A DNA stretch of 64,000 bases from Phaeosaccion multiseriatum (GCA_965112735.1 OZ218955.1:3844001-3908000); one strand, 5' to 3'. Positions 16,688 to 50,874 are shown, counted from the first letter of the stretch. The notes: generated from the sequence alone by a model not told the origin. Numbers and translations are program-made.

Positions 16688-19600
16688 ATGTCTAGCGTCC
16701 TCGAGGAGCAGCGTAGTATACTCACAGCCCTCTTTGACGCCACGAGCGGACCCGCTTGGTCTAACACTGGGGGATGGAACACTGACGCATCTTTGGAGGA
16801 CTGGCTCGGAGTGAGCGTAGAGAAAGACCATGTAGTGAAGCTCCGCCTGTTCTGGAACCGCCTCGAAGGTGAAGAGACGTGATTATAGTTGTTGCGCCTT
16901 AGGTCCTGAAGTATTATCATCATGTAGTAGTTAGTAGAAAAGAAAAAGAAGAAGAAAAGGGAAGGAGGAAGCAAGCGGGGCAAGAGAAGGTGTGAGGCAG
17001 CGGCATGACGTGGTAGTCCAGCGACCCGTTCGCGTCGCTTTCGCTCGGTGTTAGTGTGACCGAAGAACTTTCCTCCCACCATCCGCAGGAAGCATTCCGG
17101 TGGAGCTTGGACGGCTCGGTCTGCTCACCCATCTGGACCTCCAAAGGAACAAGCTCACGGGTAAGTGGTACGCACACCCAGTCACTTCCCTTTCACTTGA
17201 TGTTAGTGTGACCGAAAAACTCTCTTCGCATCTGCAGGGAGTATTCCAAGGGAGCTTGCAAGTCTGGAGAACCTGACGGTGCTCAACCTCGGCAACAACC
17301 AGCTCAGCGGTACGTGGTACGCGTACCCGTTAGGCGTCCCTTTGACTTGATATCAGTGACCAAAGAACTCTCCTCCCATCCGCAGGGAGCATTCCACCCG
17401 AGCTTGGGCGTCTGCACAACCTTACGCTGCTGGACATCTACCATAATCAGCTCACCGGTGAGTGGTCCCCTTCCCCTTCGTGTCCCTTTGACTTGATATC
17501 AGTGTGACCAAAGAACGCTCCTCCCATCCGCAGGGAGCATTCCACCAGAGCTTGGAAGTTTGCCGAACCTTTTGGAGCTGCAACTCTGTGTAAACAAGCT
17601 CACTGGTAAGTGGTACGCACACACGCGTCCCCTTGACTTGACTTGATGTTAGTATGACCAGAGGACCTTCCTCCGCTTCGCAGGGAATATTCCGTCGGAG
17701 TTGGGGAAGCTGGCAGAGCTTCGAGAACTCAGGCTGGGGAGGAACAATCTAGAAGGTAGGCGGTACGCGCACCCGTTCGCGTCCCTTTGACTTGATATTT
17801 TGTATGGCTGAAGAACTTTCCCCACATCTCAGGGAACATTCCGCCGCAACTAGGACAGCTTTGGAACCTTCGAGAACTTTGGCTCTCTGGTAACAATCTA
17901 GAAGGTAGGTGGTACGCACACCCGTTCGCGTCCCTTTCGCTTGATAGTCGTATGACAAAGAACTTCCCTCCGCTCTGCAGGGAGCATTCCAAGGGAGCTT
18001 GGAAGTCTGGAGAAGCTTGAGGTTTTGGTCCTCTCAGACAACAAGCTCACTGGTGAGTGGTACGCGAACCCGTTCGCGTCCCTTTGACACGTTTGTGTAT
18101 ATAACCCAACATCTCCCCTCCTCCCTTAGGTCCTATTCCCGCTGCCCTCATCGGGCGATTGGGGATCAAGATCAGGGTATACTTTTTCCGTTATAACAGC
18201 CTCAGTCTCCCTGAAGACATCAACACCCAGACCCATCTGACCATGCTCGATTTGTCCGATCAGGGCCTTGTAGGTGGGTGGTACGCACACCCGTCCGCGT
18301 CCCTTTCATTTGACATCAATTTTTTTCTTTTTTCGCGCCCCCTTAACTTGATATGAGTATGACCAAAGAACTCTTTCCTCCCATTGCAGGGAGCATTCCA
18401 CCCGAGCTTGGAGGTCTGCAGAACCTTTGTTTCCTGAACCTCTATAACAACAAGCTCACCGGTGAGTGGTATGAGACCAGCAGAAGGTTTGGGCTGGGAC
18501 ACTGCAGCGTACAATTTGGGGTGGCGCCTGGATGGGACTTGACATTTTTGTTTTGACAAAGATCTTTCCGTCTTCTGGGGAGGGAGCTTTCCGTGGGCCT
18601 GTGGACATGTCTGGACATGTCTGGAGCATCTGCGGCGCCGTCGCACGCAGGGAGGGAGCGTCCCAATTTCTGCTGTAACAACACCCCCACCGCAAACCTC
18701 ACGCGTTCTTGTTGCCTCGCTCGCCTTATGCGCTCCTGTCCAGAGATATCACATGATGCCGCAATAGCCCTAGGAAAGCTCCGATGGATTGAAATACTTT
18801 TGAGTAGGAATGCTTGGCGCTCTCCCAGCGCCGACGTGGTGGACCAAGGGCTGGATGCGGTGAAGCGGTATTGGATCGATCTCGAGCAAGGCCAGGACCG
18901 GTGGTGGAAACTGAAGGTCATGCTGGTGGGGAAGTCTGGGGCAGGCAAGACGAGCCTAGCGGGGTCGCTTGAGGCTGGCAAGAGCGAGCTTGTTGGAAAG
19001 CAAGGTGACGACTCTACGACAGTTGGCAACGGGAAAAAGGACGAGACGGTTGGCATCGAGACGCGCAACATAAAGCTGCGGGAGGGCGAGACGAAGCCTT
19101 TGGAACTTGTCATTTGGGACTTTGCGGGGCAGCAGGATTACTACGCCTACCACCAGCTGTTTCTCACCGAGGGGGCGTTGTACGTGCTCACCGTCAACCT
19201 GGTCACCTTCGTCAGCACAGGGAGTGAAGCAGGGGAGCGGGACCTGCTGGTGGTGGAGTGGCTGGACACGCTGCAGGCGTATGTGCCTGGCAGTTTGGTG
19301 GTGGTGGTGGGGACCCACAAAGATGAGGTCGAGGGAGAGGACGAGGAGCGTGTGGAGAGGGCGAGGGAAAAGCTCGAGGACCTCGTGAACAACACTGTGG
19401 AGGCGCACAAAACATGTGGGGTTGACCCTTTGAACGTGCAGGGTACGTGCTTGACGGTGGATCTCGGGAGCGACGAGGATGTGCAGCGAATACGTAAGTT
19501 CATTACGAAGCTCGCGTTAGAGGGGTGTACCCACGAGACACCCAGCGAGCTGTTCCCGAATATAGGGAAAGTAGTGCCCAAGCCGTGGATGGAAGTGCAT

Positions 19601-48900: not shown

Positions 48901-50874
48901 AATGCTCCCTGCGGATGTGGGGAAAGTGGTTTGGTCACACAAAATATCAAGTGCAAGGGACGCGAACGGGTGTGCGTACCACTCACCGGAGAGCTGATTC
49001 TCCCTGATGTCCAGCACTGTAAGGTTCCGCAGACGCCCAAGCTCGGGTGGAATGCTCCCTGCGGATGTGGGGAAAGTGGTTTGGTCACACAAAATATCAA
49101 GTGCAAGGGACGCGAACGGGTGTGCGTACCACCTACCTTCTATGTTGTTGTAGCCGAGCCACAGTTCCGTTAAGTTCTGAAGACCTCCAAGCTCCCTTGG
49201 AATGATCCCTGCGGATGGGAGGTGAGTTCTTTGGTCACACTCACATCAAGTGAAAGGGGCGCGAACGGGTACGCGTACCACTCACCAATGAGCTTGTTGT
49301 GGGAGAGGATCAAACGCTCAAGCTTCTCCAGACTTCCAAGCTCCCTTGGAATGCTCCCTGTGGATGGGAGGAGAGTTCTTTGGTCACACTCATATCAAGT
49401 CAAAGGGACGCGAACGGGTGTGCGTACCACTCACCGGTGAGCTTGTTTTCGTTGAGCTGAAGTTCTTGAAGGTTTGAAAGCTTGCCAAGTTGCGGCGGAA
49501 TGCTCCCTGAGATGTGGGGAAAGTTCTTCAGCCATACTAATATCAAGGCAAGTCAAGAGGACGCGAGGTTGAGCACAATCAGGTTCTCAAGGCTTCCAAG
49601 CTCTGGTGGAATGCCCCCTGCGGATCGGAGGAAAGTTCTTTGGTCACACTAATATCAAGTCAAGGGGACGCGAACGGGGTACGCGTACCACTCACCGGTG
49701 AGGTGATTGCCACTGAGTTTCAGCACCTCAAGGTTCTGCAGACGCCCAAGCTCGGGTGGAATGCTCCCTGCGGATGGGAGGAGCGTTCTTTGGTCACACT
49801 GATATCAAGTCAAAGGGACACGAAGGGGAAGGGGACCACTCACCGGTGAGCTGATTATAGTAGATGTCCAGCAGCGTAAGGTTGTGCAGACGCCCAAGCT
49901 CGGGTGGAATGCTCCCTGCGGATGGGAGGAGAGTTCTTTGGTCACACTCATATAAAGTGGAAGGGACGGAAACGGGTTCGCGTAACACTTACCACTGAGC
50001 TTGTTCCTTTCGAGGTACAGTTTCTCAAGGTTCTGAAGATCTCCAAGCTCGAGTGGAATGCTCCCTGCGGATGGGAGGTGAGTTCTTTGGTCACACTCAC
50101 ATCAAGTCAAAGGGACGCGAAAAAAGTTGGGCCACACTGATGCCAAGTGAAAGGGACGCGGACGGACGGGTTCGCGTACCACCTACCTTCTAGGTTGTTG
50201 TTGTGGAGCACTAGTTCTCGAAGCTGTGGAAGCTGTCCAAGGTACGGCGGAATTCTCCCTGCGGATGGGCGGAAAGTTCTTTGGTTACACTCATATCAAG
50301 TCAAGGGGACGCGAAAAAAGTTGGGCCACACTCATATCAAGTGCAAGGGACGCGAACGGGTGTGCGCACTACTCACCGGTGAGCTGATTCTCCCTGATGT
50401 CCAGCACTGTAAGGTTCTGCAGGGCTCCAAGCTCGGGTGGAATGCTCCCTGCGGATGTGGGGAAATTGGTTTGGTCATACTCATATCAAGTCTAGGGGAC
50501 GCGAACGGGTGCGCTACCAATATCAAGTCAAAGGGGCGCGAACGGGTCGCTGGACTACCGCTGCCTCACCCCTTCTCTTCCCCCCTTTCCTCCTTCCCTT
50601 TTCCTTCTTTTTTTCTTTTCTACTACTACACTACTACATGATGATAATACTTCAGGACCTAAGGCGCAACAACTATTATCACGTCTCTCTCACCTTCCAA
50701 GCCGTTGCTAGCCAGCTCAAGCTTCACAACATAGTCATTTTCCAGGCTCACTCCGAACCAGTTCTCCAAAGGTGCGTCAGTGTTCCAACCAGCCTTGTTA
50801 GACCAAGCGGGTCCGCCCGTGGCGTCAAAGAGGGCTGTGAGTATACTACGCTGCTCTTGGAGGAAGCTAGACAT
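45967..50874 (-). CDS. Second one-LRR-per-exon gene or cassette reservoir, paralogous to 16688-18461
   Basis: ATG 50874, N-cap exon 50874-50694. Intact 72-nt exons start at 50448, 50258, 50064, 49915, 49767, 49506, 49357, 49208, 49058, 48908, 48757, 48608, 48459, 48311, 48162, 48013, 47863 and 47713. Truncated cassette 49617-49561; 141-nt double exon 47564-47424; second cap exon 47148-46960; then 46892-46812, 46612-46541, a remnant at about 46465, identical exons 46361-46290 and 46215-46144, and a 102-nt exon 46068-45967. Confidence 0.88.

Follow-up and report, generated by a model that had tools for sequence, protein, structure and literature searches.

Background

In brown algae, the leading candidates for pathogen receptors are ROCO genes built from LRR exon cassettes. 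In plants, TNL clusters evolve by birth and death, unequal crossing-over, gene conversion, and positive selection on exposed LRR residues, and they include truncated paralogues. The lamprey VLR system starts from an incomplete germline gene that is completed from flanking non-functional donor cassettes, with an AID/APOBEC-like deaminase, while shufflons depend on a dedicated recombinase and on short specific inverted sites at the segment borders.

In Ectocarpus and other brown algae, type I LRR exons of 72 nt have been described as shuffled and under diversifying selection, with LRR-only genes as their possible reservoir (PMC3341825, PMC11378527), and the question since 2012 has been whether ROCO cassettes are reshuffled over evolutionary time only or within the organism as well. 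Somatic recombination was put forward as a hypothesis in that year (PMC3341825), and a 2024 paper still describes it as undemonstrated (PMC11378527). Here we analyze a 64,000-nt stretch of DNA from Phaeosaccion multiseriatum (GCA_965112735.1 OZ218955.1:3844001-3908000; hereafter the window, from whose first letter positions are counted), with all data coming from one assembly of one individual. We consider it probable that the locus found there arose recently by inverted partial duplication of a ROCO-type candidate receptor gene and that it evolves through unequal crossing-over, gene conversion in short tracts, and diversifying selection; in the best reading, this evolution corresponds to the germline "exon shuffling" known from publications on Ectocarpus ROCO genes.

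Anatomy of the locus

The left gene begins with an ATG at 16688 on the + strand. Its first exon (16688-16868, +; 181 nt), which ends in phase 1 at a GT donor, translates into an LRR N-cap-like region; we use this label because of the position of the exon and the pattern described by Zambounis et al. (PMC3341825), as neither the isolated N-cap exons nor the isolated closing exons gave a Pfam match. Seven cassettes follow (17089-18129, +), each composed of a 72-nt LRR exon and an intron of 76-78 nt, with exon starts at 17089, 17238, 17386, 17534, 17684, 17833, and 17981, all bordered by AG and GT, and TRF reports this array as a tandem repeat of period 148 with 6.4 copies. The closing exon (18130-18273, +; GPIPAALIG...) encodes two fused atypical LRR units in 144 nt, that is, twice 72, and an eighth LRR exon (LRR8; 18390-18461, +) lies downstream of a 116-nt "fused" intron. 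The last exon (18744-21262, +) encodes a linker, a ROC GTPase, a COR-like region, and a TIR, with the stop codon at its end. The left gene is complete and open, with about 1140 codons and canonical splice sites.

The right gene lies on the - strand and consists of exon 1 (50874-50694, with its ATG at 50874), an array of 19 cassettes (50448-47565, with the cassette exons between 50448 and 47642), and a closing exon of 141 nt (47564-47424). The 7 left and 19 right cassettes counted in the initial annotation are indeed present, but right cassette 6 (start 49617) is broken by a deletion that took its 3′ end and donor site, which leaves 18 intact and usable. Similarly, the near-invariant short intron attributed to each 72-nt phase-1 exon is found at about 76 nt, except for two right-array introns of 118 and 122 nt. 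In the two arrays plus LRR8, 26 intact exons have a length of precisely 72 nt and AG/GT borders, and they conform to the brown-algal type I pattern of one LRR per exon with the consensus GxxPxxLxxxxxLxxLxLxxNxLx. The residues that never vary are I, P, L, L, L, and N (positions 3, 4, 10, 13, 16, and 21); every junction of both genes is in phase 1, and the TRF scores of the repeats (563-1434) are far above chance.

A third LRR-only array (47148-45967, -), made of an N-cap-like exon (47148-46960) and five LRR exons, is in frame with the right gene and also has no ROC; its TRF period is 146 with 93% matches, and the exons of two of its cassettes are 100% identical. Between the two genes lies a unique, gene-bearing spacer of 24.7 kb (21263-45966) that contains the large exon of a DIS3/RRP44 exoribonuclease gene (29425-31029, -; 80% identical to Phaeothamnion) and a degenerate integrase fragment (22680-23426, -). 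Large microsatellites are also present in the spacer.

With symmetric 72-nt exons, any subset could be skipped in frame, and alternative splicing might thus be the main source of receptor diversity. Phase and exon size are uniform, donor and acceptor sites are near-identical, the broken cassette 6 must be skipped if the right gene is to be open, and many LRR-exon splice variants have been documented in Ectocarpus ROCO genes (PMC11378527). However, splicing would leave the mosaic DNA pattern and the inverted copy unexplained, and we regard its role as the main source as possible but doubtful; it would in any case be compatible with, and additional to, the duplication that we favor, with the DNA arrangement serving solely as its substrate.

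Comparison with brown-algal ROCO genes

The locus resembles the LRR-ROCO genes of Ectocarpus and other brown algae in encoding each LRR in a single 72-nt exon whose codons are split identically (nucleotides 3-71 give 23 residues), in its consensus GxIPxxLGxLxxLxxLxLxxNxLx, and in the order of N-cap exon, LRR block, linker, and ROC domain. Further common features are shuffled exons, variable positions under diversifying selection, LRR-only relatives, and inverted LRR exons near the gene, and one brown-algal locus (L003) has the same 72-nt exons on both strands. Nevertheless, the inverted cassettes of Phaeosaccion form a whole second gene 29 kb away, whereas the brown-algal ones are scattered inside introns. 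The introns differ as well, being about 76 nt here with a nucleotide diversity of 0.21, while those of L003 are 350-480 nt long and unrelated (~33% identity), although exon identity is 62% in both. The Hapterophycus match to the ROC-COR-TIR module covers the ROC region only, and TRF, at a maximum period of 500 nt, found no repeats in the Hapterophycus locus, where the unit is two cassettes (~740 nt).

The ROC-COR-TIR module

Pfam identifies a Roc domain in the last exon of the left gene (PF08477, 4.5e-16, 59.6 bits against a cut-off of 27) and a C-terminal TIR (TIR, 2.2e-11; TIR_2, 2e-11). In a PDB profile search, the ROC domains of LRRK2, M. barkeri Roco2, and C. tepidum Roco (1e-27 to 1e-20) rank above Rabs, and the PDB sequence matches of this exon also include plant TIRs. 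When "rewclkete" of the TIR is aligned to "stwcleelv" of Roq1, the Glu of the WCLxE motif, which is the catalytic residue of TIR NADases, is kept. We infer that the receptor would signal through TIR NADase activity.

Pfam COR (PF16095) gave zero matches in residues 251-650 of the last-exon protein, even at E <= 10, and most brown-algal ROCOs are likewise without a Pfam COR match (Teng et al. 2024, PMC11378527). A profile alignment to LRRK1 spans the ROC and continues further (positions 17-357), and a Foldseek search with a low-confidence AlphaFold model (pLDDT 52, built on a 7-sequence alignment) returned only RocCOR structures in the top ranks and included the COR-only entry 3dpt among its matches (E 1e-5, TM 0.39). 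These results point weakly to a COR-like region after the ROC. With its N-cap, one-LRR-per-exon cassettes, closing exon, ROC, COR-like region, and TIR, the left gene is a candidate cytoplasmic immune receptor. A tblastn search with the ROC-COR-TIR exon found neither another copy of it nor a remnant in the 64-kb window, in agreement with the earlier statement that only the left gene joins it.

The C-terminal TIR sets this gene apart from brown-algal ROCOs, for which LRR-ROC-COR, followed by a conserved C-terminal region or a TM segment, is the only architecture reported (Teng et al., PMC11378527). This domain and the compact homogenized introns would appear to be what the locus adds to the brown-algal ROCO descriptions (PMC3341825, PMC11378527). 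Among 1.8 billion cluster representatives, a word-indexed and an exhaustive HMMER search found no relative of the module above 40% identity; the best protein matches were ROC-TIR sequences of Chrysoparadoxa australica (P0001 and P0002; locus L001), at 36-40% over the ROC, the middle region, and the TIR. In that species, 72-nt LRR exons with mutually similar introns of 70-98 nt lie directly upstream of the ROC exon, but the intron sequence is unrelated past the donor site and the GC content is 50%, against 59% here; this comparison covers the two cassettes before the contig end, and on such short contigs the array and any partner copy fall outside view.

The combination of an LRR sensor, a nucleotide-binding switch, and a TIR with the Roq1-aligned Glu is also reminiscent of plant TNLs, as are the cluster of paralogues, their recombination and selection processes, and the truncated paralogue found here. 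In contrast to TNLs, a ROC GTPase and COR-like region take the place of NB-ARC as the switch, the LRRs come first and the TIR last, and each LRR has its own symmetric exon.

An inverted duplication of the arms

The inverted duplication extends over 11.6-18.3 kb on the left and 55.8-47.4 kb on the right. The left arm includes the non-coding upstream region and 5′ UTR of the left gene (11625-16687, +), and the right arm includes the corresponding upstream region (55806-50875, -); the main BLAST HSP pairs 13000-17003 with 54572-50558, and there are two more inverted HSPs. Over about 5 kb, BLAST with gaps gives 91% identity for the upstream arms, and aligned bases alone give ~96%; there are many indels and, for substitutions only, 4518 matches and 185 mismatches, or 3.9% divergence. 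This similarity and the 144- and 141-nt closing exons bear out the original description of two convergent genes with a common upstream region, N-cap exon, and closing exon. Microsatellites are abundant in the left arm and mirrored in the right one, and a perfect (CTC)124 run adjoins the outer edge of the left arm.

In the order of events that we infer, the copied segment comprised about 5 kb of sequence upstream of the gene together with exon 1, the LRR array, and the closing exon, and would have stopped about 40 nt into the next intron, where the inner edge of the duplication is found (18312 / 47385). Because the copy ends short of the ROC exon, the right gene keeps its promoter copy, its own start codon, and an open LRR-only frame, without the signaling module, and it may well be expressed. 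The ~4% flank divergence would have accrued since the duplication or the last homogenization of the arms, with the arrays being rebuilt in the meantime. Given that the arms are only ~4% apart while the arrays are almost unrecognizable, this internal clock indicates that cassette turnover is much faster than point mutation.

Inverted duplications near repeat arrays or long microsatellites are classic sites of misassembly, and with the (CTC)124 run at the outer edge of the left arm, the inverted copy might be a mis-joined haplotype or paralogue, or a fold-back chimera. Nonetheless, the ~4% difference and the many indels between the arms are not those of a fold-back of one molecule, the inner ends are unlike (the ROC-COR-TIR exon on the left and the third LRR array on the right), and the arms are joined by the unique gene-bearing spacer, all of which makes an assembly artefact very improbable.

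Mosaic cassettes, conserved introns, and selection

The intron motif CCCGTTCGCGTCCC occurs 29 times, against 0.55 expected, always within the LRR arrays and in gene sense, and exact-pattern scans of metagenome contigs found none. The introns have a nucleotide diversity of 0.21, compared with 0.48 for third codon positions and 0.35 for those in invariant-residue codons; conservation of the cassette introns is thus roughly double that of synonymous sites in the exons. Given the Chrysoparadoxa ROC-TIR gene, which has the same design with another intron sequence, concerted evolution seems to fit better than ancient constraint, although the conservation of introns beyond that of synonymous sites could instead reflect a family-specific intron function. 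No signal of RNA structure was seen in the conserved introns (cassette and intron folding z-scores from -1.5 to +1.75), and Rfam gave 0 matches at gathering thresholds in the 64-kb window.

The arrays are mosaics, because the closest partners of exons and of introns differ. For instance, the L7 exon is nearest to R8 (92%), while its intron is of the R19 type (100% and 97% in its two halves), and the 3′ half of the L5 intron is nearest to that of the R6 intron (95%). R9 and R10 have introns that are 97% identical and exons that are 60% identical, and the reverse is true of R1 and R10 (exons 92%, introns 60%). At 5/6 positions, L2-L7 match R3-R8 colinearly in one segment or more. A GENECONV-style test, in which the longest identity run is compared with permuted site order, flagged many pairs, but all of the runs fell in the slowly varying intron; we set this result aside because it is confounded by between-site rate differences and used only the descriptive exon/intron discordances. 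Cassette turnover is ongoing, as seen in the broken cassette, the footprints of fused introns, and the 100% identical exon pair of the third array.

Exon 1 contains an island of divergence from the right copy in codons 27-60 (26/102 nt differ, pS 0.41). Its 3′ 100 nt have a pS of 0.41, against 0.039 in the flank (p = 9e-8), and are bordered by ~95% identical stretches, which marks this patch as apparently imported sequence.

Among the LRR exons, pN/pS is 0.3 at scaffold positions and ~1.0 at variable positions, and these values are unchanged within the right-array cassettes alone. The left and right closing exons have 19 nonsynonymous and 2 synonymous differences, with a nonsynonymous rate that is 5x the flank rate (p = 6e-8) and a synonymous rate equal to it. 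The signature is that of diversifying selection on putatively solvent-exposed LRR positions and on the closing exon.

Three ordinary germline processes would account for these patterns under the duplication that we favor. Unequal crossing-over and deletion between conserved introns would alter the cassette number; gene conversion with tracts of ~100-200 nt would act inside an array, from one arm to the other, and from paralogues at other genomic sites; and diversifying selection would act on exposed LRR positions and the closing exon. Recombination would thereby homogenize the family-specific introns while selection keeps the exons apart, and the alike introns would in turn supply the homology for in-frame swaps of whole exons.

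Germline turnover or a DNA switch

Exact inter-arm matches of at least 50 nt occur at only two array positions, L3/R4 (104+86 nt) and the last intron (74 nt), all others in the arrays being at most 47 nt. The first lies in a 191-nt tract with one mismatch (17356-17546, +, against 49945-49755, -), and the second in a tract of ~105 nt with one mismatch that runs through the last array intron into the closing exon (18052-18156, +, against 47642-47538, -). The near-identity of 17386-17533 and 49915-49768 with differing neighbors, reported initially, is confirmed: 147/148 nt agree, identity reaches 30 nt upstream and 13 nt into the following exon, and the flanking sequence is ~77-80% identical. Rather than an out-of-register recurrence, the pair may be a surviving orthologue, since it fits the colinearity of L2-L7 with R3-R8. 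We also discarded L3/R4 as a clear case of recent conversion, which had rested on the 91% BLAST identity of the arms; at the 3.9% flank divergence, this 99% pair is only mildly less diverged than predicted (p = 0.02), and survival of an orthologue would be equally possible. Jointly, the two tracts are somewhat less diverged than the flanks (p = 0.003), and exchange between the arms may be continuing.

The initial annotation went further and proposed that a crossover between any left and any right intron could invert the 29-kb spacer, or that the right array serves as a donor of cassettes by gene conversion. Such donation could take place somatically or at a high germline rate. The geometry and the reading frame are right: both genes are in frame, every product would be as well, since all junctions are in phase 1, and an intron crossover would yield a ROC-COR-TIR protein with right-arm N-terminal and left-arm C-terminal cassettes. 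The right array keeps 18 open spliceable cassettes with a scaffold under purifying selection and its own promoter copy, the introns are unusually alike, and the two long tracts, slightly younger than the flanks, are usefully placed, as the last-intron tract would exchange entire arrays. The generality of "any" intron fails, however, with exact identity of at most 47 nt for most intron pairs, and the 5-kb flanks are far better substrates, in which recombination leaves both genes unchanged. Moreover, no antisense cassettes or hybrid junctions are visible in the window, and somatic recombinant ROCO loci are unreported in brown algae (PMC11378527).

As in lamprey VLRs, LRR cassettes are the units of diversity here, and, as in shufflons, inverted repeats could flip a segment and swap gene ends without DNA loss. 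The VLR-like donor library is nevertheless not supported, as the left gene is already complete and the cassettes on the right are spliced as exons of another gene that has a start codon of its own, not non-coding donor fragments. The shufflon analogy was not upheld either: no deaminase, invertase, or specific recombination site was found in the window, the one recombinase-like match in Pfam scans of its ORFs of at least 150 aa was an rve fragment below threshold (23 bits, cut-off 32.6), no inverted recombination signal was noticed on inspection of the cassette alignment, and the sequences common to both arrays are ordinary diverged intron/exon homology. The idea of an inversion switch, which restates the published somatic-recombination hypothesis, is therefore poorly supported by the sequence, and the one assembly shows no sign of a programmed switch. 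We hold a programmed or frequent DNA switch of either kind to be very unlikely, and its most specific form, a reversible inversion through the L3/R4 tract and the tract of the last intron and closing-exon start, to be slightly less likely still.

Implications

If such a switch did exist, recombination at the last intron would place the 18-cassette array onto ROC-COR-TIR and leave the 7-cassette array LRR-only, while recombination at L3/R4 would exchange the N-cap and first cassettes. The homogenized introns would then be the recombination substrate of the switch, and, if it occurred within individuals or clonal lineages, a photosynthetic stramenopile would be shown for the first time to switch a receptor at the DNA level. 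As inversion would lose no DNA and create two predictable junctions, the locus makes the rearrangement hypothesis cheaply testable.

Even without rearrangement, the recent inverted duplication that we favor clearly illustrates how introns evolve in concert while the exons between them are under diversifying selection. In this stramenopile alga, the cassette design is also joined to a TIR output domain, and this TIR ties these candidate receptors to the TIR cell-death signaling of plants and bacteria.

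A complete LRR-ROC-TIR gene with a putative COR region, and its LRR-only partner

The window is GC-rich eukaryotic DNA (59% GC) with microsatellites throughout, and the paired inverted cassette arrays described in the initial annotation are present in it. On the plus strand, the left gene starts with an ATG at 16688 and comprises a 181-nt exon 1 (16688-16868), an array of seven 72-nt LRR exons (starting at 17089, 17238, 17386, 17534, 17684, 17833, and 17981), a 144-nt closing exon encoding GPIPAALIG... (18130-18273), one extra 72-nt LRR exon, LRR8 (18390-18461), and a 2.5 kb last exon (18744-21262). 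All of the junctions read AG-exon-GT and are in phase 1. The spliced exons amount to about 1140 codons, and both the in-frame splices into the LRR and ROC exons and the stop-free 840 codons of the last exon were verified separately. Pfam matches in the last exon correspond to Roc (4.5e-16) and TIR (2e-11), and the gene needs no completion. Just downstream of it, the region 22321-23426 contains a pair of overlapping minus-strand ORFs read in different frames; one of them matches an integrase core (rve) weakly, at 23 bits and thus under the Pfam cut-off, and the pair is probably a decayed retroelement.

The right gene lies on the minus strand, with an ATG at 50874, an exon 1 homologous to that of the left gene (50874-50694), an array of 19 cassettes, each an LRR exon plus its following intron (50448-47642), and a 141-nt closing exon (47564-47424). 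Although the counts of 7 and 19 cassettes reported previously were correct, not all of the cassettes are intact, as right cassette 6 (49617) is missing both its 3′ end and its donor site, leaving 18 that are usable. As noted previously, only the left gene carries the ROC-COR-TIR exon: a tblastn search with it found no second copy or remnant in the window. Given this result, and given that a small third LRR-only array located in frame downstream (47148-45967, minus strand) carries an N-cap-like exon of its own and simply ends thereafter, we take the right gene to be LRR-only. The third array also contains a truncated 34-nt exon remnant near 46480 and a 30-nt insertion in its last exon.

The ROC assignment is solid, with support from Pfam and from sequence matches in structure databases. 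Pfam did not detect COR. Two observations hint at a COR region following ROC: a profile alignment to LRRK1 runs beyond ROC, and a low-confidence model of the last exon has Foldseek matches to RocCOR and COR-only structures. The TIR domain aligns with those of plant TNLs and keeps the Glu of WCLxE. Teng et al. (PMC11378527) stated that brown-algal ROCOs are LRR-ROC-COR only, and the TIR found here is thus a departure. Among 1.8 billion representative proteins, only five matches fall below 1e-30, and the closest are two ROC-TIR proteins from Chrysoparadoxa (40% identity). In Chrysoparadoxa australica, the first 560 positions of the contig carrying the ROC-TIR locus (L001, 1-560) contain 72-nt LRR exons, a degenerate LRR exon, and a ROC-exon splice acceptor, up to the contig edge. 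Because these exons and the acceptor sit upstream of position 856, where the public gene model starts, that model is probably truncated at its N-terminus. The spacer between our two arrays harbors a large exon of the DIS3/RRP44 exosome exoribonuclease (29425-31029, minus strand; Pfam RNB 5.6e-92, plus CSD2/OB domains), whose best named relative is that of Phaeothamnion confervicola (80% identity). The source of the window is a stramenopile alga close to brown algae and the classes that are sister to them, and differs from Ectocarpus.

Divergence and selection between the duplicated arms

According to a self-BLAST of the window, the inverted homology exceeds the genes in extent, running from 11625 to about 18312 and from 55806 to about 47385. 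In noncoding DNA, 185 substitutions over 4703 aligned bases (3.9%) and many microsatellite indels separate the arms; the arm differences are mainly indels in long simple-repeat tracts. The inner edge of the duplication lies about 40 nt inside the intron 3′ of the closing exon, and therefore the copy reached from the promoter region through exon 1 and the array to the closing exon, without the signalling exon. As for the simple repeats, a perfect (CTC)124 marks the precise outer limit of the left arm (within 11272-11642), (CTGT)131 at 12944-13469 is mirrored by (CAGA)116 at 54106-54572 in the other arm, and a 32-nt minisatellite (x10) and about 450 consecutive (GT) units occupy 41205-41521 and 41548-42449, respectively.

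Exon 1 combines two patterns. Its first 78 nt differ between arms at 4 sites, while its last 102 nt present 26 differences, 9 of them synonymous (pS of 0.41 vs. 0.039 in the flanks, p = 9e-8), and identity returns to about 95% in intron 1. This sharply bounded island (16766-16868 vs. 50796-50694), with 26% divergence that includes synonymous sites, resembles a tract of roughly 100 nt brought in by conversion, its source being a diverged paralogue not contained in the window. In the closing exons, 21 of 138 nt differ and 19 of these changes are nonsynonymous, a rate five times that of the flanks (p = 6e-8), while the synonymous rate equals the flank rate, which we interpret as positive selection between the two paralogues. 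In comparisons of cassettes with one another, the 14 scaffold positions have a pN/pS of 0.3 and the 9 variable ones a pN/pS of about 1.0. These values are unchanged for the right-array cassettes alone, and thus the right cassettes evolved as translated LRRs.

Mosaic cassettes and probable homogenization of their introns

Mean pairwise identity among cassettes is 62% for exons and 75% for introns. The near-identical left/right cassette noted previously is confirmed and is the sole such pair: the third left and fourth right cassettes (L3/R4) agree at 147 of 148 positions, in a tract spanning 17356-17546 and 49945-49755. Likewise, a stretch of about 105 nt that covers the last array intron and 27 nt at the start of the closing exon has 1 difference between arms. 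When the exon and the 5′ and 3′ halves of the intron were compared separately for each cassette, different parts had different partners. For instance, the L7 exon is nearest to R8 (92%), while its intron halves match R19 (100% and 97%), and L5 is nearest to R6 (95%) in its 3′ intron half but similar to R16 and R17 in its exon. Within the right array, R9 and R10 have introns that are 97% identical and exons that are 60% identical, with the reverse pattern for R1 and R10. Judging from these partners, the arrays are mosaics; they also turn over much faster than the flanks. By their best segment matches, L2-L7 are colinear with R3-R8, which fits a history in which a long ancestral array would have lost about 11 left-hand cassettes where the L7 exon meets its intron, or the right array would have gained them there, followed by several exon-sized replacements.

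Besides the mosaics, signs of turnover include the broken cassette, three introns of 116-122 nt, and two third-array cassettes (46361-46290 and 46215-46144, minus strand) whose exons are 100% identical, which indicates a very recent tandem duplication. The long introns, two in the right array (50376-50259 and 50186-50065) and one in the left gene between the closing exon and LRR8 (18274-18389), have an internal junction in common, ...GGCCCAAC / T-run / CGCGTCCCC..., which resembles two fused intron halves. The deletion of an exon probably left this footprint, which then spread to further positions, the left gene among them.

Diversity is lower in the introns (0.21, or 0.19 without splice signals) than at third codon positions (0.48) or third positions of invariant-residue codons (0.35). 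The intron core motif CCCGTTCGCGTCCC occurs 29 times in the window vs. 0.55 expected, is confined to the LRR arrays, and is always in the sense orientation. Searches of the cassette introns gave no signal of RNA structure and matched no Rfam families. In a brown-algal ROCO locus (L003), exon identity is the same 62%, but the intron ends are unrelated (about 33%), unlike those of our window. The short introns of the Chrysoparadoxa ROC-TIR gene are also mutually alike, although their sequence differs from ours. Similarity of introns inside one genome, combined with dissimilarity from one genome to the next, is the signature of concerted evolution; whole cassettes would be homogenized by recombination, with selection holding the exons apart. 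In the brown-algal locus (L003 9500-17700, GCA_964200375.2), both strands carry 72-nt LRR exons, interleaved in introns that are 350-480 nt long, an arrangement also described for Ectocarpus. The cassette period in our window (148-150 bp; 17089-18129 and 47565-50448) is near the length of nucleosome-core DNA, which may be a coincidence.

Proposed recombination between the arrays

The initial annotation proposed that crossovers between the inverted arrays flip the spacer and place a new LRR set on the ROC-COR-TIR module, or that the right array serves as a donor library. The geometry of such a switch works: a crossover after Li and after Rj inverts the spacer and leaves both products in frame, with a predicted Ncap_R-R1..Rj-Li+1..L7-closing-LRR8-ROC-COR-TIR gene and an LRR-only reciprocal. 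However, the idea that any left and any right intron could recombine did not hold, as exact inter-arm matches of at least 50 nt occur at two places only, all others being 47 nt or shorter. Moreover, the outer flanks hold the longest homology, and inverting the segment through these would leave both genes unaffected; the left gene is already complete, and neither a recombinase nor a specific recombination site was found, the sole integrase-like ORF being a sub-threshold fragment. The sequence thus argues weakly for a programmed inversion switch. The mosaic arrays uphold diversification driven by recombination, but programmed inversion and a donor library did not emerge from the analysis. The L3/R4 tract and the tract at the last intron are of slightly more recent date than the flanks (p = 0.003), and occasional inter-arm exchange, ordinary for inverted repeats, is therefore plausible.

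Somatic cassette recombination in LRR-ROCO genes was put forward in 2012 (PMC3341825) and was still reported as undemonstrated in 2024 (PMC11378527). A second route to diversity, the alternative splicing of symmetric cassettes, is documented in Ectocarpus ROCO genes (PMC11378527). What sets this locus apart from the known ROCO cassette genes is its TIR output, its compact homogenized introns, and its whole-gene inverted partner.
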